From positions 3,100,001-3,164,000 of the forward strand of contig NC_047071.1 of NCBI RefSeq assembly GCF_902459465.1: a DNA stretch of 64,000 nucleotides, in the 5' to 3' direction. This document shows positions 679-63,821 of this stretch, piece after piece (position 1 is the first letter of the stretch; each line of letters starts with the position of its first letter). The stretch is from Asterias rubens (lineage: Eukaryota). The translations under genes and the position numbers were made by a program. Below the pieces are notes generated by a model. The model made no database searches. It had not been told where the DNA came from and was given only the letters and a program-made list of their open reading frames with translations.

Positions 679-3600
679 TTGGATTAACGGTGTTGCACAT
701 TGCACAGTTTTGCATCACTGCACGAAGTCGTGTGATTTCCTTGGTCTTGAAATAAAAAGTAAAGGGTATATAAATTAAATTCAACATTTGAGTTAACATT
801 TAAAATGGTATACTACACTAAAGTCAAGTTGTGATCAGTCATTGACCATGAAGATGGAGACAAAATATCAATTGTAGCAAGAAAAAATGACAAACACATT
901 GTTAGTTACCTGTTCGGTCAGTTCATTTTTTAACACGTAGATGGAGTCAACCAAGGAGTTCAAGGCGTCCATTAAAACTACTGAGTCAGAAACTGCAAGC
1001 AAGAACAAATACAATATAAATATAAACTCAGGAGCCACATTTCAGTTACCTATTTAAACTGTAAAAACTCCCGGTCAGAATTGACCCGGATCAAAATCCC
1101 AGGAAAACTGACCCGTATATGGGTAAGACTGACCTCAAAAAGAGTTTTAAAGGGTTTAAGCTCGGATTCTGCTTCAGTTTTAGCCATCTCTTGACACAAA
1201 TTCTGGGTCACTGGGTCACATTGACCCAGAAACGAGTCAGGCTCCTCCTGTAACCCGAAAACGGGTCAATTGTGATTCTGGAGTTTTCAGTGGCATTTAC
1301 TTCTGAAAACTACTTATTTATTAAAATGTATGTAAGTTAATATGATTGCTGAGTTTATCTCAATCAACAAAAACATTGAGAATTGTTGCTATATACAAAT
1401 ACAATTTTAATGATAACTTAGCTCAATCCAGAATACTTCCAGAAAACTTTTCCAGAAAAAAATAATATATCAGAGTATATTCTGGGTCACTGCTTACCGG
1501 TATCTCTCTCCCGTTCATCCAGCGGCTGGCATCCCATGGAGCCCAGAGCTTCGCCAATTGAGCTTCCAAACAGGAACTTCACACCCTGGACCGAACCCTA
1601 ATTGGAACGTTTAAAGTAGGGAAACAGAGTTGGTTTTGGGAAAAGTAAATTTATCTCAAACCCTCCAATAAATACACAGATCAACAAACATTTTAAATAA
1701 TCAGCAGGCTGTGTAATCAATGTTTTCGAAGAAAAAGAAGAAGAAGAAGAAGAGGAAGAACAACAACAACAACAACAAAAGCGAAAGAATTTCTAATATT
1801 TGTGGTGAATTTTAGTGATGTTCGTAAAAATGTACTAATTTTGATTTGGAAAAAGACAAACAAGTGAATGCTGGTTGATTTTATACAACGCAGTACTTCG
1901 CCTTTAGTCATTAATTCATGACGATCTTGAGAAACACAAAGCTAGTCTCCAGATTGTTAAATACTTCATTTTTTGAAGATCATTTCCCAAACCATAATCG
2001 TGCCTTTAAGTATAAACCATTATACCAGATACAAATTAGGCTTCGGAAAACCATCTCGTCTTATTATAGAAAAGCTTAATAAATGATTTGATGCGACTGA
2101 ACAGATGCGCTTTGCAGTGTAATTGGTCATTGGAGTTAGGAATGTTTCTTGCAGTAAAGGAATAATAAGTAAAGGGCAATCCCACATATAGCGTAGGCTC
2201 CTACTGTAAACTCACAGTAACTTGTTTGTTTGTCGATAGACGTATTTCAAGCCGGGATATGCCTTTCAGATGACTTTATCGTAAAGGAAATTCAATTTAC
2301 GTCTAGAAATGTTGACTTATTGAAGGAACTTGTGTTCGACATTGCTTGGCCGGTCAGTCTAAAACAGGCATTATAACTAGGTTAACCCTGTGTAAAGAAC
2401 CCTGTCTTCTAAAACAAGTATGCATATTGATATCGCCACACCAAAAAGGGCCAGACTATTTTTCAGTTTGGCTGTAATGGTATAAAAGGTTAGTTACGGG
2501 AGCTTCCGGGTCAGAATTGACCCTGATTCAAGTTTTGTGGGACCTGACCTACTTCCTAGTCAGTTTGACTAAGAGTCTGATGACTTTACTACAATAAAGG
2601 TAGTTGGGAGGCTTCAACAAGTATTTTACACTATACAAATTTTCTAGTCAAAATTTACCCTGATCCGGACGCAAATTCCGGGTAAACTTTGACCCAGAAG
2701 TTTTTAGAGTACAGAAGACATTCGACAAGGAACGTTTCAGTAAAACAAATTATATTTTTCCTGCCAAGAATTGGGAAATAGATATTTTGATATATTTTAT
2801 TTCATGGAGATTGCATAGAACTATAGGCCTAGTTGCCTGTAAATTTGCCAAGACAAAAGTGGAAATATACATGTTGATGTGTTTTATATTGTGGCGATTG
2901 CATTGGAGTTACCTGTAAATATTGGTATCTGTCCCTTAAAAGGTGAAGGGGAAAGAGGGAAATATATCAAACGTACTTGCAGTGGTTTCGGTGATGTGAC
3001 GAGACCGCCTTGTCCTACCGTCATCTTGGCCAAGTTCAGGGCCTTCTTGTTGAAGGTCTTCCCCAGCCGTCCGGCCAGAGTCTGCGGTTTGCCAACCACG
3101 TCGCAATCCACGTACAAAGACATCTCGTTGTAGGGGTTTTTCAGTTCGTGAAAATGCAAAATGAAGGTGTGCCACTGACCGTCCGTTAACTTGACGTCAA
3201 GGAATTCCATTGTTCTGCTGTCTTCGCCTATCATGTAGCTGAAGGACACTGAAAAGTAAAAGGAATACAAAATGCTATAATCCACCTAAAGGGAAGATAT
3301 ACGTTTGGTAATCACTTTTAAAATAACTGCCAATAACAACTTTTGGTTAGAGACAGAGCAGCTTTTCGATAGTATAAAGCATTTCGAAAAAATATTTCGC
3401 TTCGAAGTAATGTGGGTTTGTACACAGATGTCAGCTTTTACTTCCCAAAATGTTGAATTTGAGAAGCGCTCCGGACGTGCGAAACGTCCATAACACACCT
3501 ACTATTTTCAGAGCCAAAACTTCTACACAATTTACGCATGGCTGTACCCTCAAAAACACTAGATACAGATTGAAAATCTTATCTTAACAAAAAGTCTTAC

Positions 3601-6600
3601 CTTTACCATTTGTAGTATCTCTCCCATCAAACATAACCTGGAAGTACGGATACCGGTTATTCAACGAGTACACACCGGTCAGAATGCTCTGAACGCCCGG
3701 TGTTAACATCACTCTAGCCACCAAGAAAATCTCCCCCTGGCTTCGGATTTCCCTGGCAAACGTCCTCAGATACACCTCGTCCGCAATGAGGGAGTTGTAC
3801 TGCAAATTGCCGTCGAACTCGTAGGTGTCACCGAAGAGAGTAGAACCCCGATCCACGACGGAAACCCCGGGGATTCGAAGGGTTTTGATGGGGAACATCT
3901 CGAGGAGGTTCATATCTGTGGAAGTAAATTTAGAAAAATTAATGATTTATAAAGGATTGTACAAGATTGGTAAAGATACAAAAAATACCATTGTTAAAAT
4001 TTTAGATATCAAATAATAAATCACAAATCCTTGTTTAATTTTGGCATGAAAGCTTTTGATTATGAAAATTATACTAGAACCATTTTGATAACCATTTTGA
4101 AAATGAAGTCATATTCGGAAAAACTGTACCTGAAAACTTGAACGAAAACAAAACCAACCTGATTTTGATTGTATACAACCACTGTACTATATGCTAAAAA
4201 ACTGTGCATGTTTTTTCACTACTTTCTCCAAGATTTACACATAATTGTTACGTATGGTTGATTATACAAACATGAACACTGGGTGCGATTATTTTGTCAG
4301 CTCTACCAATCCTGTGTTATACCTTTAGTGTCATTTTGAAGAGAACTGTGTGCAGACACGAAGGCAAAATAAAACACATGGTAAAAACAACAACCTATTA
4401 TAACCCAATTTGAAACCTTAATTTTACACCTTAAAGTCGCTTTTTTAGACCACATGAAAACACATTTCATGGTAAGTACCACAGTGCGTAGCCCTCATCC
4501 ACAGAGCTCCTTAAGGTAAGTTTAATAGACCGATACCCGCGCTACCCGCTGCTCCCCGTTAGACTTTCTTTGGCCTCGTGCCACAAGTCAAGCCCAGAGT
4601 CAAGGAAACAGTTTTGTATCTTCTCATTTGAGTTGCTCACGAGTTGCATTGTCCTTTTTCGCAGAACCATGTAAGTGCACACTGCTCAAAATGTCACTAG
4701 CTCATACTGAATCTTTCCAGAACGCACCGGTTCAAGTTGTCATCCGCACCCTAAATCAACTATAGTCCTAAATGTCCCAAACCAAACCAGCACGTGTTCC
4801 ATAGTTGTATTTGAAACAGAATTATAGACGTGTATATCCGTATCTGTAGCCGCCAATTTGGTCACGGTCTAAGTTGAGATGAAAACCAAGCAAATGCTTC
4901 ATTCTCACGAACAAATCAAAAAAGGTCTAGTGGTAGCACTTAAAGACTAACTAATACATCAAAACTAAGCTTTCGCATCAACAACTATCATAAAATGCAA
5001 GCACAATCAGATTTTGTATAATATGTGAAAACATGGTACGGATTTAGTATGTCTCCATGCAGTTCACTCTTCTTGCTCGTGGTTCATCCTTTTCACTTTC
5101 CTGTTATAGGCCCATATATACAGAATAAGGGTCCTGTAGAGGGCTATGTTTCTCAACTCCAATGGCCGAGTCTCCACAAATAAAAAGAACGAGGTCGAGT
5201 GCCAGCCATGCCGGTCATGGTACCCCGGTGTCCTTGAACGAGACACCCAGACGTAATTTGCTTTTCTTAAGCCACAGGTGTGTAAATGGGGGAGCTGTCA
5301 GGGTTCTAGGGGCGGTGCCGTGAACCTACGATTGAACTCGGGGCGTCGTCTAATGGAAGGTTGTGTATGCTCCACGGGGAGTCGAACAAGTCGAAGAATG
5401 GTCGAGAATTGGCAGACCTAGCGGTCGTAATAATGTGGACCAACGATGCTGTGTGTTATTTGTATAAAATCTAGACCGTGATTGTGTTCAAACGTGATAT
5501 TTTGTCAAATTTTAAAAATGACCGCCGGCTTAAAAATCGTTGCGAGCATTAGAATATAGACGATCAGAGCATACTGATCGAAACGTCGAGTTAATCCAAC
5601 GGTTCTTTTCAGAACCACCCCAACTCATTTAGAGATTGTTATTACATGGTGTTACCGCAAACTCTTCTATATCTTATTTCCACCATGCAAAGTTTCAAAT
5701 CCTACTCATTAGAATATAAATCGGGATGTTGAAGTTATAACTGTTGAATTGCAAGCTGTGTTTGATGTTTGTTTGTTTGTTCAAAATTATGGCTTCGTGT
5801 ATTCTATTGGGGTCGAGCCAAGGTGAACGATTGTCATCATTACTGAGGTGGGGGGGGGGGCAAGAGCAATTTTTTTAAAATTCGCAAGGCTTTCTCTATT
5901 TGATAAAATAGCGCATCACAAAACTTATATTATTTGAGCCCCTCTTTAAGCTGTTCTGTCGACACGTGTGCGCAGAATCAAAATACAAGATGCGCCCACC
6001 CAGGTGCCGAAAGTAGATCGCACAAGACGAGACCAGGGCCAAATTTCATAGAGCTACTAAGCACAAAGATTTGCTTAGCATGATTTTTCTTCCTTGATAA
6101 AAGCAGGATTACCAACCAAATTTCCACTTGTTGCACATTGTTTGTTACTTGTATTCAGCTGTTGTTTGATTATCCAGAAATCACCTGGAAAATAGGTTGG
6201 TAATCCGGTTTTTATCAATGAAAAAGAATTGCATGCTAAGCAAATTGTTGTGCTTAGCAGCTTTATAAAGTAGGAAACATCGCAAATATATTGAAGACAT
6301 GTCTAGGAACTGTGCACTATACTTTGTGCTATAAGTTCTTGTGAACATAAATAAAAGCCTGGTCATGGTTCAAATGAGATGTGAAATCGAATACGAAAGG
6401 TTAATATTGATCTAAAATTATAGCTGAGCAGTCTAGCCATAACAATTTATTCAATACTGGTTATGAGATCTTGCAGAAATTTTTTTCTAAAGTTGGCAGC
6501 AATGTACAGTAATGCAAACATGGGTTACTTCATCGACCAATGGAACAATGTACAACAATTAAGGTTAGGCTATACTTGCATTAAAGTAGATGCAAATAAA

Positions 6601-9640: not shown

Positions 9641-10260
9641 ACACGATTATATCGAATGGCAAAAATTGCCAAACAGGCAATTTGGGGAGAAATTTTTGGA
9701 ATGGCAAACATTTTCGTCCCAAGTTTGTCTCTTTTGTATGTCTTAATGGTTTGAGTTTCGGAAATACAAATGGCATACCATGATTTTGGGTTGGTATCAC
9801 TGCCAAAACTTGGGGGTGTTGAATTGACTATCTTGGTATCTATAGTTCGACATGATATACATTGTGTTCTTTATCCCTATAAGTTTATTGTTTGTGAAAT
9901 TAACACTGTGGGATACCAAGAAATACATAGAGCTTGGCGGGATGTTCAAACGGCGTCACATGGAAACGTACGAATTTTGTTAAACCGTTTCAGCCGATTC
10001 TTATTATCGATATTTCGTTGATCTTTTTTATCGACTATTCTACCTTTTTAGTGATACTATAGCGTGCTTTCGAAAGACCACGGTAGGGACACCAGACGGT
10101 AGACAAATTCTAAGCGTGTTTTTTTTTCCCCAGGGAAGATGAGGTACAATAACAACGTGTGCCTTATGGAGGAAAACTCCATGGCCTTACCGTCCCAATC
10201 GAAAGACGGAGGACGCTACATGTTGTTAGCTCATGGAGATTGCATGGAGATGCAATACAA

Positions 10261-21592: not shown

Positions 21593-21620
21593 TATTTGGC
21601 AGTTAGGCTTGCGTACTTAA

Positions 21621-24600
21621 CTAGACGGTTGTTGACTTTTCTATAGCCGACTGGCGGTGTGTTTGTACGGTAGACGTTGATCGGTAGAAGGTGTAGAATG
21701 GCGTGAAGACCAACTTGCCGAAGACGTACTCATTATCGTGTTCGTCTCGGATCTCTTTTTGGATACCGAACGCTGCCTCGTACGACGGTGGGGGCGCTGT
21801 TTCAAAATGAGAGGAGACGACAAAGGTACATTCTTTTGAACAAAAAAGTGAAAGTTTCTGTATATGACTGTCCATAATGTGACAGGAGATTCTGTCCTCC
21901 GGATATTCTGTCGCCCCCCCCCCCCATACGGCGAACTGTGTACAAACTTTTTTCTTACAGCGCCCTCTTTTGAGTCATCCTCCTCCAGCCCATGTTTAAT
22001 TTCCCGTAGGGGACATGTCCTGGGAAATTGTTTTCTCTAAACAAAGTTCCATGTTCAAGTAAACTGTCTCTTTAAAACTTAAAACTTTCTATACAATGCA
22101 TACTATATCAAATAAATATCATAAAAACGTTTCTCGCTGTCAGACTTTTATCTCATCCAATTATTTGCATGCACAGGGCTGTCTACATGTATGTGTTCAC
22201 TCTTCCCTTCACGACACACTCGGTTTTACATTTCGATTTATTCTCAACAATGTCACGAGGAATGATTGCTCTGTTTCCAAACCCATATTTTATCCATGAC
22301 ACAAAGTTGACAATGCACAACGCACAACTCTTGGCCAATGACAAGTTTTCCTTTTAACCTCAATGAGGGCGCTGTTTTAGCTTGTGATATCATAATTATT
22401 GTAGAATATTGTATTAAGACAAAATAATGACAAACCTCCAGAGGAGCCGGGCTGGTCAGACGACAGACTGTCGTAGCAATGGCCCTTCAGTGGAATAGTG
22501 CCTATGATGATCTCCAACATAATATCCACGTCAAAAGGTGTACTCGCTACATCGGCAGTAAACTTTAACGAGAAAAATGACTCATTAAATATTAGACAGT
22601 GATGAACACTTCAAAACATGTATGGTGACAATAAACGCTTAAAAAACATTTGGGCTAAACTTTACTTCCATTGTTTTCCTAACAAAAAAAGCACAAGGTA
22701 TAAAGATAATTGAAAAATATTTGAACAGCATGGGCTGTTGCGATAATCTAAATATTTTTGTGATCACCTTAACGTAGTATCGTATGTCAATGAAGTTACA
22801 CCCTTGTAGATTGCATGGTGGCAGTGGTGGGATGACCATTGGTTTTCTGTCCCAGTGAGCTGTGCCATAAGAACCACAGGCTTCTGTGACGACACTGGTT
22901 ACCACATGAGATGTCGTACGGTACCCAGGCGACCCTACACCATCCCGCCTTGCATAATAGTTAACCGACTATTAAAGAGTGAGAAGAGAAAATGGTGAAC
23001 GCAAACTAATGATGACCAATGAGTTAACTCTGTTAGTCGATTGTAAAAAAAGTTGTCAAAAAGAACAACCCATAATGCAATTGGTTATCAATCAGGTGTT
23101 ATTGGCTAAGTTGTGAAAAGAAAAATACATAATGCAATTGGTAATCAATAAAAAGGTACAAGTTATGGAGAGAACAATTACAGCATAATGCAGTTGAATA
23201 TCAATACAGTCTTATATGGATAATTGACTGTTGAACAGAAGTTGCGAGAGAAATGAACAATAATCAAACAAATAATTTTCAATAATTTGGGTTTAACTGA
23301 TATCCCTGACTCTATTATAGCAGAACGTGGGAGACAAATAGGCTACGGAATGGCCATACAGATTTTATCAATATTGCTGTACTATTAATTATTACGAGAG
23401 ATTGTGCGGTATCCAGGCGATATACACCATCCTGCCTTGTATAATTATTAGGCCTAATTACTGACTATAAACAGTGAGAAAAGTATAATAGTAAGCACAA
23501 ACTAATGCAAACAATGTGTTCATTGTTTCTCAATATAAGTAATCAATATTGTCAAACCAAAGTTGGGAAGAAAAAAAAAACAATAGTTAAAAGCAATCAA
23601 TAAAGTGGTATTTATTCGACAGTTAAACAGAAGTCATAAAAAAGCAATATAGTCAATGGAAATGATGAGCAATATTATTATAAGTTAACTGATTTTCTTG
23701 CGCCCGCAACAAACCGTCAGAAACGCGCAGACAAAATATGCTCAGGTCACAACAACTGAGAAATCGTCAAGCCTTCGATTGGTTGAAATTTGAAATTGTT
23801 CTACTTTGCGACTGTAATTTTTTTTTCTCGAGCGGCGACTGTTTCAGATTGTCTTCAAACAATCATCGCAGTTACGCTCAGGTCGTAAATAATCGCCGAC
23901 TGAAATGTTCCCCATGGTCGTAACGGCTCAGGCGCAGTGTGATCCGGAAAATCAGTCGCCGACTTAACTGTTTTTTTGTTGACGCAAGGTCGACCGAAGC
24001 CAATTTAATGTTAACTGACTCCACAGCACACGTGGGAGAAGAGGGGAGCTCCATAACTGTCATACAGTAACTGTGTATGCCGGAGCTGATTAGGTGCAAC
24101 ACACCTTTATCAAGGTTACAGGATCAACTGACAGGGTAAATTAAAGTAATGTGATTTGCCCATTAGTTGTTTAAAGGGGAATGCAAAGCAACACTATATA
24201 GCATAATTAAACTTCTCATTATTGCACAGCCAACATGAAGCTAACAAGAGGGAAAACAGGTATGAACAGTTATCATGGGCTGGGGGAGTAGATTTCAAAA
24301 GAGGGCGCTATCAGAAGAAGAGAGGAGAATCTTCTGCCACAACGGAATCCCGGTCAATTTGTGACCGTTTTGTTTTGGTTTTTTTTTTGGATTGCTGGGA
24401 ACGCGACAAAGATAGTAGCGTTTATACGATTAGGTAAACTAAAGACAAGTTGGACAGTCATTGCCTGAACATCATGTGCACATACTTTTATTACACAGTG
24501 AATAAAACAACATAAACGTACGCTGCATGCAACCGGTCAAAAGTGCAAGCTGACACTACATTACCTCGGACCAATCATACCACATGAAAGGCTTACGTCA

Positions 24601-27600
24601 CAGCACGTTTATCCAATGAAATGATTGGGCCTGTAAGACCAGTGCCTGTCTTACGGATAAAGACAGGGGACCAGTCTATAGACAGTAATACCTGAATGAG
24701 CTCTGCTTCCAGTGAATGTACACTTCGGTTGCTCTTGTTGTCTAGAGATGCCGAGATGTAGATAGTCTCACCCGGTAGATATGCTCGCTTGTCGGTACTG
24801 GCACTGACTGACACGGGGCCGGTTGCACAACACAAACAACACACGGTCTTCTCGTCTTCATTGTATACAGGTGCCTGTGAAGATGGAGCAAATCAACAAA
24901 CAAAACCTTGGTTAAAATGCCTCAATGAAAATACATTATGAACTTCATTAAAAAAATGAGGAGTGCATCATATAATCCCACTGACTTGAAAACCTTAACA
25001 AGTAGGCCTATACTGAGAGCATACATAGCCTATATACACATTTTGTTTCTGTTGCATTTGTATTAGTGGATAACCACTGAATTGCAGATAAACCCGGAAA
25101 GCGCAGAAGTCATCTGACCCAGAATTGTTTTAATGTAATACTAAAACACATGGAACTTACTAATGGATTTTGAACTTTATTCAAATCGTAGGGTATTCCC
25201 GAAACGGTGAAAGCCCTTTTCGTGACGTGATCGAAAGTCCATGGACGGTCAATAACGGCTCTGGCCACGTAGCGGGAATAGCCCAAGGTTCCCTCGAACG
25301 AACACGGGAGCTGTCTGGTCGGAAGCTGGAACTGGAACGGCAGAGAGTGCTGTCCGGCCGGTAACTCCAACTTGGTGTCGTCTATGTCACTCCGATCTGT
25401 ACACGAACAAGAAGTACCACGATTGACCAACTGTAGGGTATTATGAATGGGTTAACGCAAATAGTGTTTTCCTATAACCCCTAAATTTAACCCTAATATC
25501 CTAACCCTAGCATGTAAATCACGATGGGGTTGTCGGAACATTGTGACGGAATATAGGGGTGTCGGAATACAGAGAAGTCACCTCAAGAATGAATCAAACT
25601 CGCATTTCAAACCACTAATCATATAGGGAACATAGACCACTTTGGTCCCACGGTTGTTTTAACGCATAAAGAAAACAAACTTGTGCACTTTTTTTAAACG
25701 GGTCCACAAATTCAAATACGCGCGAGACTTGCACCATGTCTATTACTTCCCTTTTCAATTTCTTTATATGAGCGAACTGTAGATTTACAACCAGTTGAGA
25801 TTTACAACCAGTTGATTGGCCAGCAATCTAGTCTTGGTACCCATGTCGTTGGACAAAATGAAAACCGTACAGGAGATTCAACCGAGGCTAAACAACAGAC
25901 TGACATCAGAATTATGATTTGATATTCCAGGCAGGCACTTCGTGCATAAACAGCACCAGACGATTCCATATTGTAATAATTTCATGGCGCCAAAATAATA
26001 TAAAGATTCTCTAAGCGTGTACATCTGACCTTGAATTATACATTTCATTAATTACATCCGGGCTCATTCACTAATTAAACCATCTTGTGCAATTTGCAAG
26101 ATTGTATACCAAGTTATATAGCAACAAAACCATCCACTTATTACAACAAACCATTCTTTGCGATTTGCAAGTAGTAGGCCTATACCCTTTTTAGCCACAC
26201 AGCTGAACGACTCAGACCATCGCGCAGTAATTATGGCTCCCCGCTGACCTTTGTCATGGTTTCAGACCGAGCGGAGATTGAGCACAAATAGAGCGGTCAT
26301 GCAGGCAGATTGGTTGCAGTTAAAGGAGGGTCATAATTCGTGTGCTCAGAACTATACCCGAATTCGATTCAAACATTCGAACATATTGTTGTATAATTTG
26401 AATGTTCAGTGCCTACGCCCGATTTCGCGCGTTTTACCCATTTGAGGTTTTCGGCGTCTACGTGTGTCTTCAGGTGTACCGGTTAAAATGCTTCATCACT
26501 TTTAGATATCACTCGGTTCCATTACCATAAAGACATAAACAAAGTCTAAATGTAGTGTTCCCGGAAGAAGAAAACACAAACAAGATTACTGACATTCTGA
26601 AAGCCGGATGGGCGTTTTCATAAAGTAAATAACTCAAGATTACAGCAAGAAGCTCGTCTTCCCAAAGAAAAATTGCGCGAGGCTTTTACGATATCGTTAT
26701 TGTAAGATAAGTCATCTGAGATATACAAAGACATATTTTAAGGATACCATCAACCCGAGGAGAAAAAATCTAAAGCAGACGCTGAGAGTATTCTATGGTA
26801 AATCACGTTCGGATCGTTAATAGGACCGTGCCGCTAAAAAATGAGACAATTTACAGGCACGCGGTTCCAGACAATCTCCACGAAAAAAATGTCATTCGCA
26901 TTTTTTTTTTATCGTAAGACATTGTTCGAAATTAGAGTTATAATTCAGAGTGGAGTAGTAACTGTTTGAAAGCCATTTTTGTTAAATTTGCATAAAATAA
27001 ACTGGTTGAGAGATATAGGCTGTTGAATTGTACCTTTGCCCCAGATGGTGATGTAATGGTCGAAATAGTCCTCGCCGGCTACGTACAGCACCGTCACTTT
27101 AGATTTACCACGTGACTCTATCTCAGTCCACGTCACAACAGCCCTGCCCTTCCAGTGCATGTAGATTCCTAAAATATGAGTAAAACAGATAAAGTCTATT
27201 ATCACGGGTGTATCTGTAACATAAAACATGTTCGCAAGGATAATCGAAGTGTGACGTCAAAAGTTCAGACGAAATATAACCTAACAATGGATGCGTTCGT
27301 TTAGCTTCCCTGGGTCGACCCCGGTGTGTGGTGTTTTTTTCCCCCAGGGCCAACGTGGGTAATTATCTGCACACGTTCGTCCTGGGAAAAAACCGCCACA
27401 CACCGGGGTCGACCCAGGGAAACTAAAGGAACGCACTAAATGTGGGACTTTCCAAGTCTGCTGCCACCTAGCGTTCCAATGTCTCACATTCAAAAGTAAG
27501 GTGCTATCAAGATCATAGCGCACATAATACAGATAAACATGGATAGAGGTCAGTCGTGTGAGCTTTACTAAACAGAGATAAATCCCCGAATGACAGGAGG

Positions 27601-52048: not shown

Positions 52049-55000
52049 TCAAATTTCCCCTCCATGCTTGGGTGTGTTTTTCACAGCCTGATGTTGTTGG
52101 ACAATATCACCGGTATCCACCCTCGACTGGTTCACGTTAATGACTTTCACTTCCTTAACGACGACTTCGTTATCGCTGTTTAAAGATTGATCCGTGGATG
52201 GAGCGACCTCATTGGCTGGTGCAGACTCCGTCATAGTGGCCACTGAATCTGCATTAACATTGTCCACGTCTTTTGCTACGACTTCCTCATTTGGCAATGC
52301 TTCTCCTGCTTGGTGATTGGGTATCTTTCCGAAACGACCCAAGTTGATTGGCCCATGTTCAGTATATTGTGTGTCGTCGGCCTTCAGAAGGGTTCGTGAT
52401 ACAACTGTAATGGAAGAGGGAAAATATTTGCATTTTACTTTATTTAAAAAAAACAGAACAACCCTCACAACACAAAGAGGGGTTTTTATTAGTGTATAAA
52501 AGGCTCATTAGTAGGGGCACAGATTGGTTTTTGTCAACAAAATGATTGATTTATTTTTACAAAAGCCTGAACTCTTAACAAGAAACAATGTCTCCCTTCG
52601 CCCCGCGAAAGGCCCGGTCACACAGGCCTCAATAACGAAAACGAGAATGCTAACAATGCATGCCCTCGATTGGTTGAATGAGCGTAGGCGTATTCTGCAT
52701 GGAGCATTTCAACCAATCGAATGCATTCTCTTTGCGTCGTAATTGTATCGTTTTCGTTATCACTGCAGTGTGACTTGGCCTTAACCCATAACTGCTTCTT
52801 ACCTCCTTGTGGTGTTTGAGAAGCCACCTGGCTGTCTTTCGATGAAGTGAAGGGGTTGAAGCTTGGTGCAATCAGAAGAGCAAAGGACAGCAGTAATACC
52901 TGTTTACAAAGAGAAGAAAAACTAAGTTAAGAAAAATTACATAATGCAACAGGACACTGTATGAGGCAAAAACAAATAAGCATTTAGTAGATATTTTTTA
53001 GGATTGAAAATTTACAAGGTGGGAGTATAATTAGGTGAGGTTTGGGTAGCACTTTGTCAAAATCTCTTGCAAAAAAACAATGGTTGACAACTCAACATTT
53101 CGACCAGTATGTATTCTCTGATCGTCTTCAGAGCATACTGATAGCAAACGTTGGGTTGTCTTTTCAGAACCAACACTACTCAAAAGAGATTTACACATGG
53201 TGCTTCTGCAAACCTCACCCTAATCGTATAGTTTTAAAACCACATAGCAAAGTGCTATACACAGGACAATAATGGCGTGGTGAGATCGTACACCACTGGG
53301 AACGAGGTTAACTGGGAACAAGGTTGCTCTTGAATAAAAGGAAAGCGCGTTGGACTCTTACCATGACACAGGTGCCGGACTGAGCTGCTTTCGATGTAGA
53401 CTTAGTCACAAGGGATTGTAGTTTCTTTAACTGCTCCATCAGTGTCCTGTCAAAGATAAATTGTCGTAAAACAACAATTATTGAAATGTATAGAAACAAA
53501 TTAGAAATAAGATTAATAATCATTTCTTTATGAATTCATTTAATTCTTGTTATCCTGGGAAAACTTTTCAGTGAAACACTGTTTTTCAAACATGCCTAGC
53601 AACATCATTAGTTAATAAAAAAATTATCAAATTATAAAAGAAATTAAACGTACAAAGATATTGCAGAGATTATAAAAAGTTAATAGACAGTGAGGTTAGG
53701 TTGAAATAGACAATACATTACAACGAAAATGGTTAAATACAAAAGATCTGGGTCAGCCAAAAGAGATGAACCCACACAATCATTAATAATTGCATCTATT
53801 TAGGCCTACTATGACAGTAAATAACAAAAACAAAACCTAAATGAGCCAACATTGGAATCAACATTTCTAAAAACACAAGAACAAAATTCATTACAATATC
53901 TTAATAATTTCCTGAAAATAATCTTGAAAATAAGGAGTCAAAAATCGAAAACAAGGTTAGCAATTTCCAGTCAAACGACTACATGTATACAGTAATTATT
54001 GGTACATGTAGGTATCTAAAGGGCAAGCAAGTCCACTCTTAGCAAATAGACAATTTTGAGTTGAACAAGCACTGACAGAAGATCCAGATACTTAGAGATG
54101 ACATTTGTCTCAACAAAGCATAATTTGATACTCAAGAGATTTGCAAGATATCAGACTCGCCGTCATCATACTTTAACAAAGGTATTGCACAATGAGGCAG
54201 CCTAGTCAAAGTATTTTATTGCAAAACACAAGACAACCAGGCTTGTCCTATCGTGAGTTTACTGGCCCGGCGCTGGTCTCGGGCCTGCAGTCCAGTGTTA
54301 ATTTCAAGCTCTACTGCCTGGAATTTAAAGTATGCATTTTGCAGAGAGCACTCCCATCGGAAAATCTTATTAAGTTTATGGGAATTTTCTGAAGGGGCAC
54401 CAAGGCTAGGACCAGAGCAACAGAGGCCCAATTCCATAGCGCTGCTTAAGCAAGAAATATTGCTTAACCATGTTTTGCTAAGCACAAATCAGCAGGATAC
54501 CAGTCACAAATGGTACATGTGAAATAGGATTTTGGCTGGTAACCTTATTCTGGTTAGCATAATTTTTTTTTGCTTAGCATATTTTTGTACTTTAGCAGCC
54601 CTATGAAATTGGTCCCAGAGCAACAGGCCATTACCTCTCTGGTCTCCATATTTTTTCCAGGCCTGGACTTACTTGTTCTCATTCTCAAGCTTAGCCATCT
54701 TCTTCTGCATGTCTAGATTTTGTTTTGTGCAGAGATGAACGCGATGCTCCAAGCCGTCGACGTAAACCTTCTTCCTCTTCCTGCTGTCCATAGCCGAGAT
54801 CTTGTTGCGGATCTTACGCCTGACTGTCTTGAGTGACCTCTCCTCCTCCTGAACAAATAAGTTTGGGTTGAACAACAATATTTCTTAGAACAAACTTTCA
54901 ATTGACATGGCGATGCTCTACCAACTGAACTATCTAATCTAGCCCCTATGTTGGCGGTCTTCCTATTTTGTCAAATTTTTTGTTTGGGGTGCCAGTTAGA

Positions 55001-58000
55001 AGCCATTTGACCGGTACGTGCCAGATAGCCAAGAATAACCCACATTTATCCCAGTGCAGTATTTCGCCAGCCAAGAAGGATTTGGAATGTTCATTGTACA
55101 TGTACAAGATTCTTGGTTCTTGGTTGTTTTTCCGCCAAAATACTCCATGAAAGAGTCTTGACTTGAGTTGGGTTGGTACCTTAGTGAGCGAGAGGGCCAG
55201 GGTCTGGAGCCACAACCAAATGGTACAGCTGTTATTTTTATACTTTTACGGGAAAATTGTAAAATATCTCAGTTAAGCTTAATCTCAGTGCAGTATCTTG
55301 CCTACCAGGAAGACCTTGGAATGTACAAGTACAAGGTTACATGGTTTATAGGAGGAAGAAAACCTAAAACTGTACCTTAGTGAGCGGCATGTCTGCTGGT
55401 AGATCGATGTTCATCTCAGCTAGTAACCTCTTCTCTTCATCAGTTAGCCTCAGCGTAGGATAACTCTGAAGAAGAAAAAAAGAAAAAAAATGTTTAACTT
55501 TTGTAACCAGCTAATGTAACGCCAGATGTCATGTACATGTACATGTAGATGTAATCCACTAAATATCCACAGAATGGGTGCCATTTCAGCAAGAAAATGC
55601 TAAGTAACATCAGTGATAGCAATGGTAATTTTCTGCATCAAAAGAGCTGCTTACTGAAATGGCATCCAGTGCACATTACATATGTCAGTCTTCAGCACTC
55701 TATAATCTTTGGTTAATACTCACCGAGTCTGAAGTTGAGATGCTTCTTGTGGACATTGTGGCACTGAGGACTTTCACATCTTGGACGGTCATGGGAAGGG
55801 AAGACTTCTTACTCTCACTTGGAGATAGCTTGTTGAGATCCCATTCAAAACCAACTGCAAATTACAAAACATGTTTCAAATATTTAACTGTATGATCAAT
55901 CGCTCGCCACTTTTCTTGGATTAAAGTATGCGATGGGATCAAGCTAAATGAGTCGTTTGTTGGAAATATCGGTCCGGAGAACCAGGGGTGAAATCTCCCC
56001 CAAAAGAATTTTGTAATCTTAATACCAAGATATATCTTATTTTGCTTTGGCAACTTCCTTAAGATAAAAACATAAAGAAAGCGGTTAAAATTAGCATTTA
56101 GGCCTAAGGAAAATTTGGCAATGTAGTTTCAATAAACAACTTGACTTTAAACACACGTTGCTCAGTTTCAATGCCTAGCAACCAAAGGTGGTATAAATAA
56201 GGGGTTTTAAAAGTAAGCAAATGCTCTTTTCAAATGTAGAATATTTGTTCAAATGATCTCGGTCGACAGATGACTCATTTTGCTTGATCGCATCCCATAT
56301 GTTTGGTACTGTCTTGTAATAATCATGTCAAATTGGGTTTTTGTTCAGTTGTAAGGACTGCCGTCTCACTGATAGCTGTATTTCAATTTTTTTTTTACAG
56401 ATTGTAATGTTATTTGAACATGTTTATGGTAATATGCGCACACGATTAATTTGTTAGTAATACAATTGTTATAATCACTGGAGCGAGTCACATTTGCAAA
56501 CAGGAATAAACAAGAGATTCAATAACAGTAACATCTGTCAACTGTTTGTCAAAAGTTTCCGATTACTCAACGCTTCTTTACAACTTAGACTCACAGCTGC
56601 TGCTGAATAATCAACATAATGTACATAATTTTTTGGTCCTGGGCCCAGCATTCTCTGCTGTAAGGCTTATATAGCGGTGAATATATGCGCTAACTATGTT
56701 AGCTAATATGCAGGCACAATACATAAATTAGCTTGCAGTGACATAAGGCTCATATTTTTCTGCAACTGAAAGTGCAGATGTTTTGGTTAAAAGCAATGGA
56801 CACTATTATGTTATTATGCCCTGTGTAAATTTCCTGTACAAATTTACATTTTCCTCCTAGAGAGGCACCTTACCAGAGGGAAATTGCTGTGCCCCTTCAA
56901 GTGCGAAGTTAGATAGTGTGGTTTGGTTTATTGTTTTTAAACTCGTGGGCAGTGGCCAAATTACAGTACAAATTACAATTTATACAAAAATAGTTTACAA
57001 ACAAAATAGTTTACAAACAAAAATATACAGTTAGCATATAAAAAATATATAGCCATTGGAGGCTATTGAAGTTGAAGGCATTAGGTTTAATAGACCCTTC
57101 CCATGAAATATGTAAATTGCACATAGCGCGTGCGCACTAAAGTTTTGGTTGGCAAATTGAGGGAACATCGCGCTGTTTTGTACACGGGTAATGGGTGCGT
57201 CACGCAGACGCGATTGCGCGTCTGCTTAGTGCACAACTCTATGGCGTTTGCCAACCAACAGGGTCTGTACGCATGCGTGAATGTAATTAGAATATTTCAT
57301 GGGAAGGGTCCATTTTGCCACTAAAAAAAGGTAGTGTGAAATAGGGAGGAGAAATCAATGATCAATGATTGAGTTTCACTTACTTGATTCAAGATCCGAG
57401 TTCTCAATAGTTGCATCCTCCATCAGCATTGTGTCTGGACCAATCAAATAGCTCGACATATCTGGCACTTTCATGCTCATCTCGTCCAAGTCGTCGATGT
57501 GTTGCGGGCTGCCCCCTGATTGGCTGTCACTTTGGTACTGTGATGGGGAGCTGACATTGTCTGAGATACCGCTGTCACTGTTGCCCGGGGACGCAACCTG
57601 GGTGTCGTACGCTGTCTGGGAAATTGTTGACAGGTCGAAGCCTCCATTGAGAAGGTTTGAAAACAGATCATCGGCGGTTGAACTCTGGAGAAAGGGCAGG
57701 GAAATGTTTTGCAATATATCAGCCCCATAGTTAAACCTACGATACATTTTAAATTTTGGGTGATGGAAGAATAACTTCATACTACATTCAAACATAAATT
57801 TTAAGTCACCTCTGAAATTTTCTGAAAGTGGTATTACTTTTAAGGTTTGCAAAAAACAAAACAGTTAATGGCTTGTTGTTTTAGACCCTAGTGCATAGAG
57901 CTATATATATTGACTAGAGCACTAACACCCCGATATACACACACTAAGGTTTTGAAGCCGTGTGGGCGCATCCATGTTTATGTACAAACCAATACAAAGC

Positions 58001-58810
58001 TTGAAATTTTGTACGGCAATTGTACGGCTATCTGCATGATAGTGCGTTTGTTCTTTTATTTGTGTCATTGAACCAAAAAATGCAGCAAATGTAAACGCAC
58101 AATCCGAGTTGATGAGCGTACAAACTGCGAGCGTCATGTGCGTCATGTTTAAAAGGCGCGTATACTCTTTTTAGTACGTCAACCAAGTCGAACTTACAGT
58201 TTTCATGGCGCGGAAGTACGCAAATGGACAGTCGCGTATGTAAGCGCCCACGCCGAATGTAAAAAGAATCGCTTCAATGTGTGTTCTCTTAAAATTAAGA
58301 TCGTTCCGAAGTCACGCAACACATCAAACATGTCTGCGCTCAGGGTGGCTTCAAAACGCAGAGCAAGTTAGCGCTCTAGTCAATATATATAGCTCTATGC
58401 CCTAGCGTAGCTTTGAGAAAGACTCTGCTAGTGCTAGGGTCAAAACGTCTGGCCATCAACTATTTTTTTGCATTTATACCGTCCTTTTGGTTGGTAAGCA
58501 GTTTGCAACATGTATTCTATTTTCTCAAGATTAATAAAATCTTCCTGAAAGGACCTCATTTCAACACTCAGCATGCTCAGTTAAAAATTTCAAAATGTTG
58601 GTTAAAATATGGGTTTAGAATGCCCCCACTTTTTGGTGACAGTTGAATAATCTGTTTACAAAATCTTACCATTGCATCTGCCTCGTTATTGAAACTGATG
58701 AATGTATCGCAGTCATCCATGAGGATTCCATCTGTTTGGTTGAAGAGAAGATCCAAGTCGCTCGATCCAGACTCGTTTCTTTCTCTTAGCGTTTCTACCT
58801 TCACTGACAT
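52049..58810 (-). CDS. CREB3L3/4-like: ER membrane-anchored bZIP transcription factor of the CREB3/OASIS family (Luman/CREB-H/CREB4-like), 458 aa
   Basis: Exons 58810-58670, 57684-57384, 55854-55724, 55465-55376, 54848-54673, 53446-53362, 52899-52803 and 52404-52049 total 1377 nt. Motifs: [13 protein letters not shown] (cf. CREB3L3 LLDLLFDRQDGIL), [10 protein letters not shown] phosphodegron-type motif, [16 protein letters not shown], b[48 protein letters not shown], and site-1-protease motif SRTLL. Confidence 0.95.
54905..55230 (-). mobile_element. tRNA-headed SINE-like remnant in a CREB3L intron
   Basis: The minus strand reads gggctagattagatagttcagttggtagagcatcgcc (tRNA D-arm/A-box) and is truncated before a T-arm. 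The extent of the element is uncertain. Confidence 0.5.
57090..57313. mobile_element. MITE in a CREB3L intron
   Basis: TIR atagacccttcccatgaaatat / atatttcatgggaagggtccat; internal inverted pairs ttggttggcaaa/tttgccaaccaa and gcagacgcg/cgcgtctgc. Confidence 0.85.
57888..58403. mobile_element. MITE with about 38-bp TIRs in a CREB3L intron
   Basis: ctagtgcatagagctatatatattgactagagcactaac / gttagcgctctagtcaatatatatagctctatgccctag. Confidence 0.85.
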
Positions 58811-59745: not shown

Positions 59746-60067
59746 TAAAATACTTCGTAGAGCTTGGCAACAATGTGATCTAATCTGTGTTTCTATTTTT
59801 GGATCATGAATCATGTTTACAGCCAGCATTGCAGAGATGACGTGGCCGCTTGATATAGCGCCACCTTGTGGTCATTATTTATTTTTCTATTTTAAAATAT
59901 ATTAATTTTTAAATTCAAGTACACAATACCAACAGAGGGCGTTGTTTCTTTCTGTAAATGTTTGGTTCTTTACGTCGTGGATCTGGACCGCATGCTTGGT
60001 GGTGAAATTTTTTTCATCTAGTATTTCTGGCGTTTTTGCATAGAAAACAGACAACAAATCATCCAAT
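59745..60067. promoter_or_regulatory. Bidirectional promoter shared by the CREB3-family gene and NSA2
   Basis: Head-to-head 5' exons about 0.3-0.4 kb apart. Contains GATGACGTGGC (59836-59846), a CTCF-consensus match CCACAAGGTGGCGCTA on the minus strand (59856-59871) and CAACAGAGGGCG (59931-59942). Confidence 0.7.
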
Positions 60068-63000
60068 ATGGTAAGGTATTTCACATCTCAAATGAACTAG
60101 CTTTTGATGACTTTATTGTTAATATTTTGAAAGGAATTGTTAGTATTTTTTATTACTGATTTTAAAACTATAAAAAGTGAACCAACTCGATCATCCAATG
60201 CAAAAACTGAACACACAAGATAATTACATGAATAGTCGGCCCCACATCATGTTTTACGCAGGAAAGTACTTCCACCGCAGCAAGTTGAATCGTGATGTGT
60301 GATGATCTTTCGAATGGAAACTTGCCCTTTTTCGACAAATTTCCCCCAAATCACTTGTCTAAATTGAATTTATGTTTATCATAGTTTCTTAAAAGTTAAT
60401 TTGTTCCTCTGACGCTGCTGAGTCCGAGTCCTGCCTGCAAAACCTGCAGGTCAATGCCGGTCATGCCACTCAAACTAGGCCTACCCCTTGTTTTATTAAA
60501 AATTGAGGATGCAAAGCATCACCATAGTTTTGCCATCACGACACAACAGAAAAGTTCTGTTGTTAAATGTTTTACATTAATAACATTTTTTAAAACAATT
60601 TTAACAGCACTGTTCTGCTCTACGCAGATGCGCCGTAATAAAAAAATCTTTGAAACAGTGAAAAGGGCAGAATAACAAAGTAATCTTTGATCTGTGATGA
60701 TAATTTTACAAACAATTATAATTTATGATTTTTTTTGGTTTTAATCTTTTACCCTCCACAGCCTCAGAATGAGTATATGGAACTGCATAGAAAGCGGTAT
60801 GGATACCGGCTTGATTATCACGAGAGAAAGTGAGTGAATCATCTTGAAAATAAAACTCTATTAAAAACTGAAGAGTTTGTTCTTAGACATGCTAAAACGA
60901 AAAATAAATAGATTCATGTTTTGTTGCTGTCGATAGATATGCTCAGACCCTACTCTAGAACGATGAGGTTATTTCCGCATGGAGACGATAGCCGAACGAA
61001 CTTCATAGTTCTAAGAGTACTCAGAATTAGTGTTGTAACATAACAAAAATGACAGGAAACTTAGTGTAAAATGCGCCTCAACTCAATGATGTGCAATTCT
61101 TTATCGTTAGCGAACCAGTCCACACTGGAATGTGCAAACCTACTGTTTTTGCATGTACCCTCACATTTTTGATAACATTTCGGTCTTGTTATTTTGTTGT
61201 GTCCCACAGGAGAAAGAAGGAGGCTCGAGAGCCCCACGAGAGAGCCAAGAAAGCCAAGATGCTAACGGGAATTAAGTAAGTAGAAAGAAGAAAGATCGGC
61301 AACGGATTTTAAAGAAAAAGGAATAGCATTTGAAGGCCTGGACGACTAGTGAAATTTACTACTCTACTAGCCACACCAGTCGCCCAGGCTTTAAAAGCAT
61401 TTGCAGACAAATAATTTTTGACAGTTTGACTGCTGCATTATTGTTTTATTTAAAAACATGAGAATGAATATGAAATGACTTTTCAAAGAACCAAAAAAAG
61501 TGTCTATTTTTATTGTTTGATTAAAATGAGAAATCAAGATGCACCGTGTGTGAAAATTAACTAATTTATTTCTTCTTTCCTTCAGAGCGAAATTGTTCAA
61601 CAAGAAGAGACATTCAGAGAAAATACAGATGAAGAAGACGTAAGTGTGATCAGAACAAAACTTGTTTACATTCTTTAAAATTATTTATTTTGTATTATAT
61701 GTATGATTGTGTTATTTTGTATCCCCAGGGAACAATTTTATTTTCAACATGTTATTGTCAATCTTTGGGAAAGAAAGATGAAAAAAACAAAAACATTTCT
61801 TCTCACTTTCAGGATCAAAATGCACGAGGACAAACTGAACAAGAAGCGCAAAACCGACGAGGTTCCAGAGGGCGCTGTTCCTGCGTATCTCCTTGACCGT
61901 GAGGGTCAGTCTCGAGCCAAGGTCCTCTCTAATATGGTCAAGCAGAAGAGGAAGGAGAAAGCCGGAAAGTGGGACGTCCCGATCCCGAAGACGAGGGGTG
62001 TGTCGGAGCACGAGGTGTTTAAGGTGCTGAAGACGGGCAAGAGGAAAGGTAAAGAAATCCGCGATAGTGACGTTTATTAAGAGAATCCCCTCGATCCACT
62101 AGAGAGAAAGCATTTAGTCCTGGTGTCCCAGGGAAATCTGTCCGCCTCAGATTTTCTCCCTCATATGAGAAATGAACATGGGCTGAAGGAGGACGAGTCA
62201 AAAGGGGGTGGAGAATCTGCTGCCACACCGGCCGATTAAAAACCAAGACTTTCTTTTTAATACTGAGATGTCTCCCGAATTCTGAAAATCTACTCCGCGG
62301 TAGCTAAGAAGTCTCCTGAATTCTCCATAAATCTACTCGACAGCAGTAGAATAATACAAGACAATTTCTCAAAAGCACATAATCTTCCTGGCAAGTAGAT
62401 ACACACATGGTGTTGCCTCAAACCAAATTTATTAATCATGCTCTTTTGTATTCGTCGTTTTCTTAAAGGCAAAGCTTGGAAGAGAATGGTGACCAAAGTT
62501 TGTTACGTCGGCGAAGGATTCACAAGAAAACCACCAAAGTATGAAAGATTCATCAGACCGATGGTAAGTAAAGCTTTCATGGCAACCGGAGAGTTACAAA
62601 AGAAAAGAAAGCAATTAATTTGAAACCTCCTGCCACAATTTTATCCAAGTGGGGCAGACACAGTTTTCAAGATTGCATCAGACAAAAAAACAAAACAAGG
62701 CTAAAAGGAATGACCTGGTTGTCAGGGACATCAAAGAGATTGTTTAAAGTTTTAGCAATTCTTTCATTTAATTCCAGGGTTTACGTTTCAAGAAGGCCCA
62801 CGTAACACATCCAGAACTGAAGGCTACATTCTGCCTGCCACTCATCGGAGTCAAGAAGAACCCCAACTCGCCTCTATACACACAACTAGGTGTCATCACA
62901 AAGGGAACCATAGTAGAGGTGAGAGGTCATAGGTTATACAGGGTGACCTAGTTTTTTGTTACAGGTGTATATCATGCTCGATATGTTCCTAAACTTTTAT

Positions 63001-63821
63001 CACACTATTTTCCTCTGAAGAACAACTGAGTTTCCAAGCACACCATGCCCATATAAGGCGCCAATTATAAGGTGCCGTCTTGTTGTGCTATTTTTGGATA
63101 CAAGGGGCCGAATCTACCCCTGAGTTGAGGATGCAAATTTAGTGCACATTTTATTCTAAGTGGAATATTGCAAATTCTATCAGCGTTATTCTACTGATTG
63201 TTATTTTTAAAAGTACCAATTATCATGATTAACAGGGAAGGCAGAAGTCTTAAGAAATAGTGCTCCCTATAAATTTTGGAAGGATTGTGTTTTAACTGCC
63301 GTTTCTTGACTGTATTTCTGAATTTTTGCTTTTAGGTGAATGTGAGCGAGTTGGGTCTGGTAACACAGGGAGGAAAAGTTGTATGGGGTAAGTGCCATCA
63401 AATACACCAAAAGTGATTTTGGAGAATACTATTTGGGGGGCGGAGGGAAGTCAAGTTTTTTTGCCAAAATAGTTAAGCAACACAATCCCCTTGGATTGGG
63501 CACTTTGGGCTATAATAAAAGTGCTTGTTATGAAATGAATATGGTTGGAAAGATGTTTTTAAAGTAGAATATAATATTGCACAAAAACATCCCTCAAGAT
63601 TGTGTGGTTTCTTCACTTGGTGAATTAACACCGACTGCCATTTTGTAAAACTAAACTTTGTTGACTCCACAAAATTACAGCCCTGTTTCTATCAAAGTGC
63701 AACTAACAATTTGACAGGAACATAACAACTTTTGTTCCCATTTTTTTTTGCAGGTAAATATGCACAGGTGACGAACACTCCCGAGAATGATGGCTGCATC
63801 AACGCTGTATTACTTGTATGA
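60068..63821 (+). CDS. NSA2: Ribosome biogenesis protein NSA2 homolog, 260 aa
   Basis: Exons 60068-60070 (ATG|gtaagg), 60762-60829, 61210-61275, 61586-61639, 61813-62048, 62469-62563, 62778-62918, 63336-63387 and 63754-63821 total 783 nt. They translate to [22 protein letters not shown]...[22 protein letters not shown]...[49 protein letters not shown]...[11 protein letters not shown], a near-identical match to recalled NSA2. Confidence 0.98.

Follow-up and report, generated by a model that had tools for sequence, protein, structure and literature searches.

The window analysed here, a 64,000-nucleotide stretch of Asterias rubens that matches the A. rubens record exactly (chromosome LR699101.1:3,100,001-3,164,000), is most likely an ordinary gene-dense part of its chromosome, in which genes of a conserved ancestral linkage group have been brought close together by lineage-specific compaction. 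The first-pass annotation had placed a subgroup-B thrombospondin (TSP), an alpha-arrestin, a CREB3-like factor (CREB3L) and NSA2 within 63 kb, and had proposed that this tight packing is the arrangement from which the vertebrate genome duplications dispersed their relatives. All four genes are present, with essentially the limits proposed, and the arrestin, CREB3L and NSA2 genes are complete (models of 391, 458 and 260 aa); only the 5' part of the TSP gene falls within the window, and a GPCR gene between those for the arrestin and CREB3L had gone unmentioned. The packing itself is probably not ancestral. The features are as follows.

679..3917, minus strand: 5' part of a thrombospondin gene of subgroup-B type (spliced RNA contigs, Pfam COMP)
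3915-3601, 3248-2977, 1597-1498, 992-910, 745-679, minus strand: TSP coding exons (exact joins in spliced RNA contigs from four runs)
21621..38080, minus strand: alpha-arrestin (ARRDC) gene, 391 aa, seven coding exons (Pfam, gene model, called product)
38080-37963, 27168-27034, 25396-25161, 24874-24692, 22968-22768, 22562-22436, 21796-21621, minus strand: arrestin exons
44977-46164, plus strand: rhodopsin-type GPCR gene, single exon, 395 aa, between arrestin and CREB3L (Pfam 7tm_1, 1.2e-43)
52049..58810, minus strand: gene for a CREB3-like membrane-bound bZIP factor, 458 aa, eight coding exons (model, tree, called product)
58810-58670, 57684-57384, 55854-55724, 55465-55376, 54848-54673, 53446-53362, 52899-52803, 52404-52049, minus strand: CREB3L exons
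59788..59873, no strand: conserved non-coding block inside the 1258-bp CREB3L/NSA2 interval (A. rubens, A. amurensis, Patiria)
60068..63821, plus strand: NSA2, ribosome biogenesis factor, 260 aa, nine coding exons (model, Pfam, PDB)
60068-60070, 60762-60829, 61210-61275, 61586-61639, 61813-62048, 62469-62563, 62778-62918, 63336-63387, 63754-63821, plus strand: NSA2 exons

At the left edge of the window, the TSP exons encode a possible TSPN/LamG-like domain and, after it, a coiled coil of COMP type that ends in CAMC. Position 679 is the final base of an exon, which ends in phase 1, and the RNA contigs continue for approximately 2.4 kb of further mRNA past the edge; hence only the N-terminal quarter of the gene is contained in the window, with the EGF, type-3 and C-terminal domains predicted to its left. 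The contigs also carry 240-295 nt of 5' exon(s) for which no position was found in the window, and the signal-peptide exon(s) are upstream of 3917. A model reading through 2977-2913 was ruled out by the same contigs, which revealed the exon at 1597-1498; the peptide of this exon (GVKFLFGSS...GC) resembles the end of TSPN. When exons 992-910 and 745-679 are spliced, the coiled coil scores above the cut-off of Pfam COMP (PF11598, E = 1.3e-6, 29.0 bits against 23.9), and the CxxC pair of the CAMC motif comes after its heptads; a phmmer comparison of the coiled coil with the PDB matched no COMP chain. The N-terminal domain shows a weak similarity to Laminin_G_2 (E = 0.0036), under the cut-off for that family, its look-alikes in the Atlas are ConA/LamG-like with generic labels, and its exon had no sequence match in the PDB. 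The COMP-type coiled coil supports assignment to the pentameric subgroup B, in agreement with the identity first proposed.

The arrestin exons match both Arrestin_N (6e-17) and Arrestin_C (4.7e-11), are divided by a first intron of 10.8 kb, and give a model equal in length to the annotated product, also with both domains, that ends at window position 38080. A single PPxY-type motif, PPPSY, is found in the tail. Comparison with the PDB ranked human ARRDC3 first (E = 3.4e-7), then C. elegans ARRD and then TXNIP, while only generic Arrestin_N labels were recovered from the Atlas, and a search for homologues of the exons returned two exon-sized genomic ORFs and nothing else. Orthology to the ARRDC2/3/4/TXNIP group is only probable; the protein appears most like ARRDC3 and TXNIP, the best solved match being the human ARRDC3. 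Between the TSP and arrestin genes (4.5-21.5 kb), no ORF of at least about 70 aa had a Pfam match, and the same search upstream of TSP found no metaxin gene, such as adjoins vertebrate THBS3 and THBS4, although short exons could escape detection by this approach.

The splice sites of the CREB3L model are all GT-AG, the A. rubens record has a called product of the same length (458 aa), and the model shares 97% identity over 458 aa with its A. amurensis counterpart and 59% with that of Patiria. The bZIP domain (bZIP_1, 1.4e-12) is followed in the model by a hydrophobic segment and then an RTLL (RxxL) motif, a layout common to 150 family representatives, and luminal cleavage at the RxxL is predicted from it. 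In an IQ-TREE phylogeny of the 150 nearest representatives, among which CREB3L1/L2 are absent, the ambulacrarian sequences form a clade (support 99/96) that follows the species tree, vertebrate CREB3L4, CREB3L3 and CREB3, including fish 'L3-like' genes, form another (96/97), and these two group with amphioxus against the protostomes (88/78). Fish genes named 'creb3l3-like' were seen to cluster with tetrapod CREB3. The phylogeny supports the ambulacrarian CREB3L as a single-copy pro-orthologue of vertebrate CREB3, CREB3L3 and CREB3L4, and the orthology to human paralogues on which the original proposal depended therefore holds for this gene.

NSA2 has GT-AG sites throughout, and its first coding exon consists of the ATG alone. 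The Ribosomal_S8e domain (4.9e-17), the length of 260 aa and a match to human NSA2 in the PDB (E = 7.2e-31 from one exon) confirm the identity given by the first-pass annotation, and by sequence the sea-star gene is a clear orthologue of the human one. The gene diverges from CREB3L in a head-to-head arrangement, with 1258 bp (1.26 kb) between the start codons. Within this interval, the block at 59788-59873 is 81% identical to Patiria over 86 nt by blastn, and an alignment of the three species contains an invariant GATGACGTGGCCG. The TGACGTGG of the block, at 59838-59845, is a candidate CRE/UPRE-like site for CREB3/ATF6-type factors. CREB3L and NSA2 in sea stars are probably under one bidirectional promoter with this conserved TGACGTGG.

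The GPCR is identical to a protein on record for A. rubens. All 120 of the listed matches with an organism name are from echinoderms, many paralogues lie on the same chromosome, and Patiria has two tandem copies at the corresponding position. The gene is a member of an echinoderm-specific, expanded family, and is outside the set claimed to be ancestral.

The age of the packing was judged from gene order in other species, using CREB3L-NSA2 as the sole pair compared across phyla; the arrestin-CREB3L distance was also checked in Patiria. The head-to-head pair is found in three asteroids, A. rubens, A. amurensis and Patiria, the latter two having called 260-aa NSA2 products at the corresponding position, and the order NSA2-CREB3L-GPCR is common to Asterias and Patiria. 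By contrast, no NSA2, arrestin, TSP or GPCR gene is present within 10 kb either side of CREB3L in the sea urchin S. purpuratus, the brittle star Amphiura, the sea cucumber Apostichopus, the acorn worm Saccoglossus (the one hemichordate inspected) or the amphioxus Branchiostoma belcheri, and the absence of NSA2 from these regions was confirmed by tblastn with its highly conserved exons. The comparison thus goes against the view that the tight packing is ancestral. An RBP_receptor (STRA6-like) gene is instead found upstream of CREB3L, on the opposite strand, in both S. purpuratus and Amphiura; as the urchin and brittle star share this other neighbour, the asteroid arrangement seems to be the derived one. 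For Patiria, walking outward from the GPCRs reached no arrestin, and there is none up to about 21 kb from CREB3L. In A. amurensis, NSA2 has a GON4L-like gene next to it.

Vertebrate relatives of the window genes are located at 1q21-22, 19p13 and 5q13-14, as well as 9p13 and 15q, with 5q and 9p linked through chicken Z. In human, COMP and ARRDC2 are about 1 Mb apart, as are THBS3 and CREB3L4, while GON4L is at 1q22, near THBS3, and STRA6 is at 15q24. Regarding paralogy, the human THBS3, THBS4 and COMP regions have been found to share the MEF2 and KCNN families, with TXNIP among the genes local to THBS3 (McKenzie et al. 2006, PMC1464143), and ARRDC genes to neighbour paralogues of NR2F and MEF2, both in the ohnologous regions of vertebrates and among cnidarians (Coppola et al. 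2021, PMC8608329). The suggestion that the human relatives occupy duplicated regions is supported for the thrombospondins and arrestins, for which it was already published; a literature search on map positions and the paralogon found nothing for the CREB3 genes or NSA2.

These observations most likely mean that the window belongs to one conserved ancestral linkage group, with relatives on human 1q21-22, 19p13 and 5q13-14, within which the CREB3L-NSA2 pair arose in the sea-star lineage. The close packing would then be secondary, other echinoderms, the acorn worm and amphioxus carrying other neighbours, and CREB3L and NSA2 would have come to share a putative bidirectional promoter with the conserved TGACGTGG in sea stars. 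Conserved macrosynteny by itself would be enough for sea-star neighbours to map to one human paralogon.

One alternative is that the whole 63-kb cluster, or at any rate its core of TSP-B, arrestin and CREB3L, preserves an ancestral microsyntenic block, which two vertebrate genome duplications copied and which was then dispersed. Such a block would fit with the location of the vertebrate co-orthologues in one paralogon (PMC1464143, PMC8608329), although macrosynteny already predicts this, with the orthology of CREB3L, with the roughly 1-Mb spacing of the two human gene pairs, and with the GON4L-like neighbour of NSA2 in A. amurensis, given the human gene's proximity to THBS3. However, it is unlikely, as the only pair tested across phyla is limited to sea stars, neither arrestin nor TSP is within 10 kb of CREB3L in the five non-asteroid deuterostomes, and even Patiria has its arrestin, if linked, beyond about 21 kb. 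Furthermore, outside the cnidarians, the invertebrates that Coppola et al. studied did not show the Arrdc association (PMC8608329). Similarly doubtful is a combined history in which linkage of TSP-B and an ARRDC3-type arrestin, possibly with a CREB3L3/4-type gene, over less than about 100 kb predates sea stars and is held by shared regulation, NSA2 alone arriving late, with CREB3L and NSA2 in addition wired to one bidirectional promoter via TGACGTGG. If true, this promoter wiring would tie a transcription factor of the secretory pathway to ribosome biogenesis.

It is highly improbable that the sea-star genes are held together as a co-regulated secretory and ER-stress module, for instance through shared CRE/UPRE-like elements. 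The motif TGACGTGG occurs five times in the window against about one expected, a count reached in none of 100 shuffles but made only after one copy had been seen, and two of the five copies are inside arrestin coding exons. The copy in the CREB3L/NSA2 promoter block does not vary between sea-star orders, and the NSA2-CREB3L-GPCR order is maintained between Asterias and Patiria, but the spacing of the arrestin differs in the latter, and NSA2 acts in ribosome assembly and is not known to have a secretory role. The convergence of the four genes on secretory and stress biology, raised by the first-pass annotation, is speculative. Pure coincidence, whereby the Asterias neighbours have no historical reason and their fit to the human paralogous regions is due to chance, would be helped by human positions spread over 1-15 Mb, by the size and gene richness of the 1q, 5q and 19p regions and by the arrival of NSA2 beside CREB3L in sea stars only, but has very little probability when two to four members of each of three or more independent families (TSP-B, ARRDC and CREB3) fall in a common set of human regions, the further neighbours GON4L (1q22) and STRA6 (15q24) also fit that set, and deep echinoderm-chordate macrosynteny is established.

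Had the tight cluster been ancestral, it would have offered a model, compact and in single copy, of what became human 1q21-22, 5q13-14 and 19p13, and a hint of regulatory coupling among matrix, trafficking and ER-stress genes. With secondary compaction as the favoured reading, the locus as it stands represents a further case of chromosome-scale linkage outliving gene order. The by-products are a single-copy ambulacrarian CREB3L, apparently co-orthologous to CREB3, CREB3L3 and CREB3L4, and a sea-star-specific CREB3L/NSA2 pair with a putative CRE/UPRE-like element.

The A. rubens locus resembles the human THBS3/THBS4/COMP paralogon (1q22, 5q and 19p13.1) in that it links a thrombospondin of subgroup B with genes whose vertebrate families extend across the same duplicated regions. 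It differs in being an invertebrate locus in single copy, its genes spaced by tens of kb, in having no MEF2, KCNN or metaxin gene seen in the window, and in including CREB3L and NSA2, which do not feature in the vertebrate comparison (PMC1464143). Likewise, both here and in the ARRDC-NR2F-MEF2 association (PMC8608329), an ARRDC3/ARRDC4/TXNIP-type arrestin is taken to mark an ancestral region that was duplicated, although the window is without NR2F and MEF2. The divergence of CREB3L and NSA2 from a 1.26-kb interval with a conserved block is reminiscent of vertebrate THBS3-MTX1, a head-to-head pair with a shared bidirectional promoter; unlike that pair, CREB3L/NSA2 is limited to sea stars, and its joint promoter activity is inferred. 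A further likeness is to the bilaterian and chordate ancestral linkage groups that Simakov et al. are said to have described in 2020 and 2022, in which genes reportedly keep their chromosome, rather than their order, over hundreds of millions of years: the A. rubens data likewise resemble linkage that has been kept while order has been lost.

The thrombospondin (TSP), alpha-arrestin, CREB3-like (CREB3L) and NSA2 genes that the first-pass annotation placed together are indeed all present in the window, but that description was incomplete: the TSP gene is only partial, and an extra GPCR separates the arrestin from CREB3L. The window corresponds to LR699101.1:3,100,001-3,164,000 of Asterias rubens: this record carries the GPCR product, encoded at 44977-46161, and a 21-kb locus taken from it is identical in every letter to the window from 34,977 onward. 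The gene models are as follows.

3915-3601, 3248-2977, 1597-1498, 992-910 and 745-679, minus strand: TSP coding exons, defined by canonical GT-AG sites and RNA contigs
38080 to 21621, minus strand: alpha-arrestin, 7 coding exons with frame-consistent GT-AG junctions, 391 aa
44977-46164, plus strand: intronless rhodopsin-type GPCR, 395 aa, annotated (LR699101.1 3,144,977-3,146,164; GCA_902459465.3)
58810 to 52049, minus strand: CREB3L, 8 exons with GT-AG junctions, 458 aa
60068 to 63821, plus strand: NSA2, 9 coding exons, 260 aa, the first exon being the ATG alone

The CREB3L model equals the annotated 458-aa product and shares 97% identity over its full length with the A. amurensis protein, and 59% with that of Patiria. 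It encodes a bZIP domain (Pfam) followed by a hydrophobic segment and an RTLL motif, both read from the model; a bZIP, a hydrophobic segment and an RTLL-type motif form the layout of membrane-bound CREB3 factors. Among the 150 nearest of 1.84 billion cluster representatives compared with the bZIP exon, no CREB3L1/L2-style sequence was found. An IQ-TREE phylogeny was built from 48 sequences, named through a full-length search and cluster look-up, with CREB3L1/L2 outside its coverage. The window gene falls within an ambulacrarian clade (99/96), in which each species is represented once and the branching broadly matches the species tree. CREB3L4, CREB3L3 and a third group with CREB3 form a separate vertebrate clade (96/97); Ambulacraria, amphioxus, cnidarian and vertebrates are together split from the protostome sequences (88/78). 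On this topology the sea-star gene is co-orthologous to CREB3, CREB3L3 and CREB3L4, and its proposed orthology to the vertebrate paralogues is supported. Within the same tree, fish and shark 'creb3l3-like' genes group with tetrapod CREB3 (100/97), apart from CREB3L3 (tree sequences P0161, P0179, P0190, P0224 and P0256 against P0070, P0095 and P0118), and their names look misleading.

NSA2 was also correctly identified: human NSA2 from pre-60S structures matches one of its exons (E=7.2e-31) and Ribosomal_S8e another, supporting orthology. For the arrestin, the annotated product has the same length as the model (391 aa, Arrestin_N and Arrestin_C, ending at 38080), the minus-strand exon ORFs match Pfam Arrestin_N (6e-17) and Arrestin_C (4.7e-11 and 5.1e-5), and the tail carries a single PPPSY motif. 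Among solved structures human ARRDC3 matches best (E=3.4e-7), followed by a C. elegans ARRD protein and by TXNIP, and an exon query for homologues retrieved two exon-sized ORFs. The gene probably belongs to the ARRDC2/3/4/TXNIP group.

The assignment of the TSP gene to subgroup B fared less completely. Minus-strand ORFs at 3587-3946 and 2887-3285 resemble a LamG/TSPN domain with weak tool support: Laminin_G_2 scores E=0.0036, under the Pfam cut-off, look-alikes in an atlas search are ConA/LamG-like, and a PDB sequence search with the TSPN-like exon gave no match. RNA contigs (four runs, probable RNA, placed on 1-6000) splice 3917-3601, 3248-2976, 1596-1498, 992-910 and 745-679; reading 2977-2913 through as coding was wrong. 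Exons 992-910 and 745-679 encode a heptad region with terminal ...TKEITRLRAVMQNCAMCN, which matches Pfam PF11598 (COMP, pentamerising coiled coil; E=1.3e-6, 29.0 bits, cut-off 23.9). This one domain supports subgroup B, and is the only family-specific evidence for it within the window; the signature domains fall outside the part seen. In one 3454-nt contig, 2523 nt follow downstream of exon 1498-1596, of which the two remaining exons explain 150 nt, leaving about 2.4 kb past the left edge; a further 242 nt upstream of 3917 has no placement in 1-6000. The gene is thus cut by the window, with its first exon or exons outside the placed part.

ORFs of at least about 70 aa between the TSP and arrestin genes have no Pfam match, and the annotation of 34,977-56,164 holds no gene beyond those named. 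Among the GPCR matches listed, all 120 bearing an organism name are echinoderm, under inconsistent automatic names, and many of the listed relatives lie on this locus's own chromosome or scaffold. In Patiria, A. amurensis and A. rubens many members of this large, intronless, echinoderm-only receptor family share a chromosome, and in Acanthaster many lie on the CREB3L scaffold. An Rfam histone 3' UTR stem-loop match at 5596-5642 (plus strand; 35.6 bits, cut-off 34; CCAACGGTTCTTTTCAGAACCACCCC) lacks an upstream histone ORF; across 5401-5800 the summed depth of RNA contigs ranges from thousands up to about 290,000, probably from histone or repeat transcripts of other loci that align there. At 10353-10716 and 10729-10813 (minus strand), a 26-bp tandem repeat of about 10 copies adjoins an ARAGORN tRNA-Leu(TAA) call, and may be a tRNA-derived repeat element. 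Dispersed repeats, 84-90% alike in direct and inverted orientation, occupy the arrestin first intron and intergenic sequence (37130-37283/42802-42955, 28798-28945/37215-37362 and 13201-13338/40766-40903), and the element is present in the A. amurensis locus too.

The start codons of CREB3L and NSA2 lie on opposite strands with 1258 bp between them, and an 86-nt block of this interval, with an invariant GATGACGTGGCCG, is kept between Asterias and Patiria. The motif TGACGTGG, which we take to be a CRE/UPRE-like site bound by CrebA/CREB3/ATF6-type factors, was picked after one copy had been noticed; the window has five copies where 0.99 are expected, a count reached in none of 100 shuffles.

17295-17302 and 17460-17467, plus strand: TSP-arrestin intergenic, 165 bp apart
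22526-22533 and 27128-27135, minus strand: arrestin coding exons
59838-59845, plus strand: CREB3L/NSA2 intergenic, in the conserved block

That CREB3L and NSA2 might share a bidirectional, possibly auto-regulated promoter is a testable idea rather than a result.

Gene order was compared using CREB3L orthologues, with 10 kb on each side, as anchors. The orthologous A. amurensis stretch is 89-95% identical to the window.

A. amurensis (sea star): NSA2 (260 aa) head to head with CREB3L, 1.1 kb off
Patiria miniata (sea star): NSA2 head to head with CREB3L; two tandem GPCR copies downstream, at the position of the GPCR here (L009, the GPCR locus, 4231-5415 and 10001-11137)
Strongylocentrotus purpuratus (sea urchin): RBP_receptor (STRA6-like) gene upstream of CREB3L on the opposite strand; E2 enzyme downstream
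Amphiura filiformis (brittle star): RBP_receptor gene upstream of CREB3L on the opposite strand
Apostichopus japonicus (sea cucumber): kinase and alcohol dehydrogenase
Saccoglossus kowalevskii (acorn worm): CCDC192
Branchiostoma belcheri (amphioxus): TERB2, a ubiquitin-domain gene and CTC1

When every exon of the window, the highly conserved ones of NSA2 among them, was compared by tblastn with the five non-asteroid loci, CREB3L alone matched. The CREB3L-NSA2 pair is therefore found in sea stars but not, within 10 kb of CREB3L, in five non-asteroid deuterostomes, and the suggested tight cluster predating the vertebrate duplications fails the one cross-phylum test. Nor was any arrestin gene or exon found in Patiria up to about 21 kb past the CREB3L 3' end, a distance of 14 kb in A. 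rubens. Sea urchin (L003 1-4039) and brittle star (L006 1-6461) each have the STRA6-like gene head to head with CREB3L; in the annotated A. amurensis and Patiria loci NSA2 is the sole gene called upstream of CREB3L, and none with an RBP_receptor domain is called there. As this neighbour is common to brittle star and sea urchin, the simplest reading is that it represents the eleutherozoan state, and that NSA2 would have reached the side of CREB3L in the asteroid stem.

Human STRA6 lies at 15q24, within the same paralogon, the set of regions including 1q, 5q and 19p13 that share duplicated genes. Beyond NSA2 in A. amurensis (L001 1-3022), at a position just right of the window end in A. rubens, lies a gene for a 2362-aa protein that carries PAH and Myb_DNA-binding_7 domains and whose C-terminal exons look like GON4L; human GON4L is at 1q22, near THBS3. 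The human map positions offered in the first-pass annotation agree with those known, ARRDC4 (15q26) marks a fourth region, and CREB3 (9p13.3) shares chicken chromosome Z with the 5q13-14 genes, which would supply the CREB3 gene 'missing' from the 5q set. It is established that echinoderm and chordate genomes are conserved at chromosome scale, and neighbouring sea-star genes should therefore fall in a single human paralogon whether their order is old or not; hence this pattern is no evidence for ancestral microsynteny. The window would instead be one piece of a linkage group that has been conserved, its local gene order having probably changed within the asteroid lineage. Published work already describes the paralogon: MEF2 and KCNN genes are common to the paralogous blocks on 1q, 5q and 19p13.1 in which human THBS3, THBS4 and COMP are found, with TXNIP listed near THBS3 (McKenzie et al. 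2006, PMC1464143), and ARRDC3, ARRDC4 and TXNIP lie beside NR2F and MEF2 paralogues, an association that its authors saw in cnidarians and did not find among other invertebrates (Coppola et al. 2021, PMC8608329).
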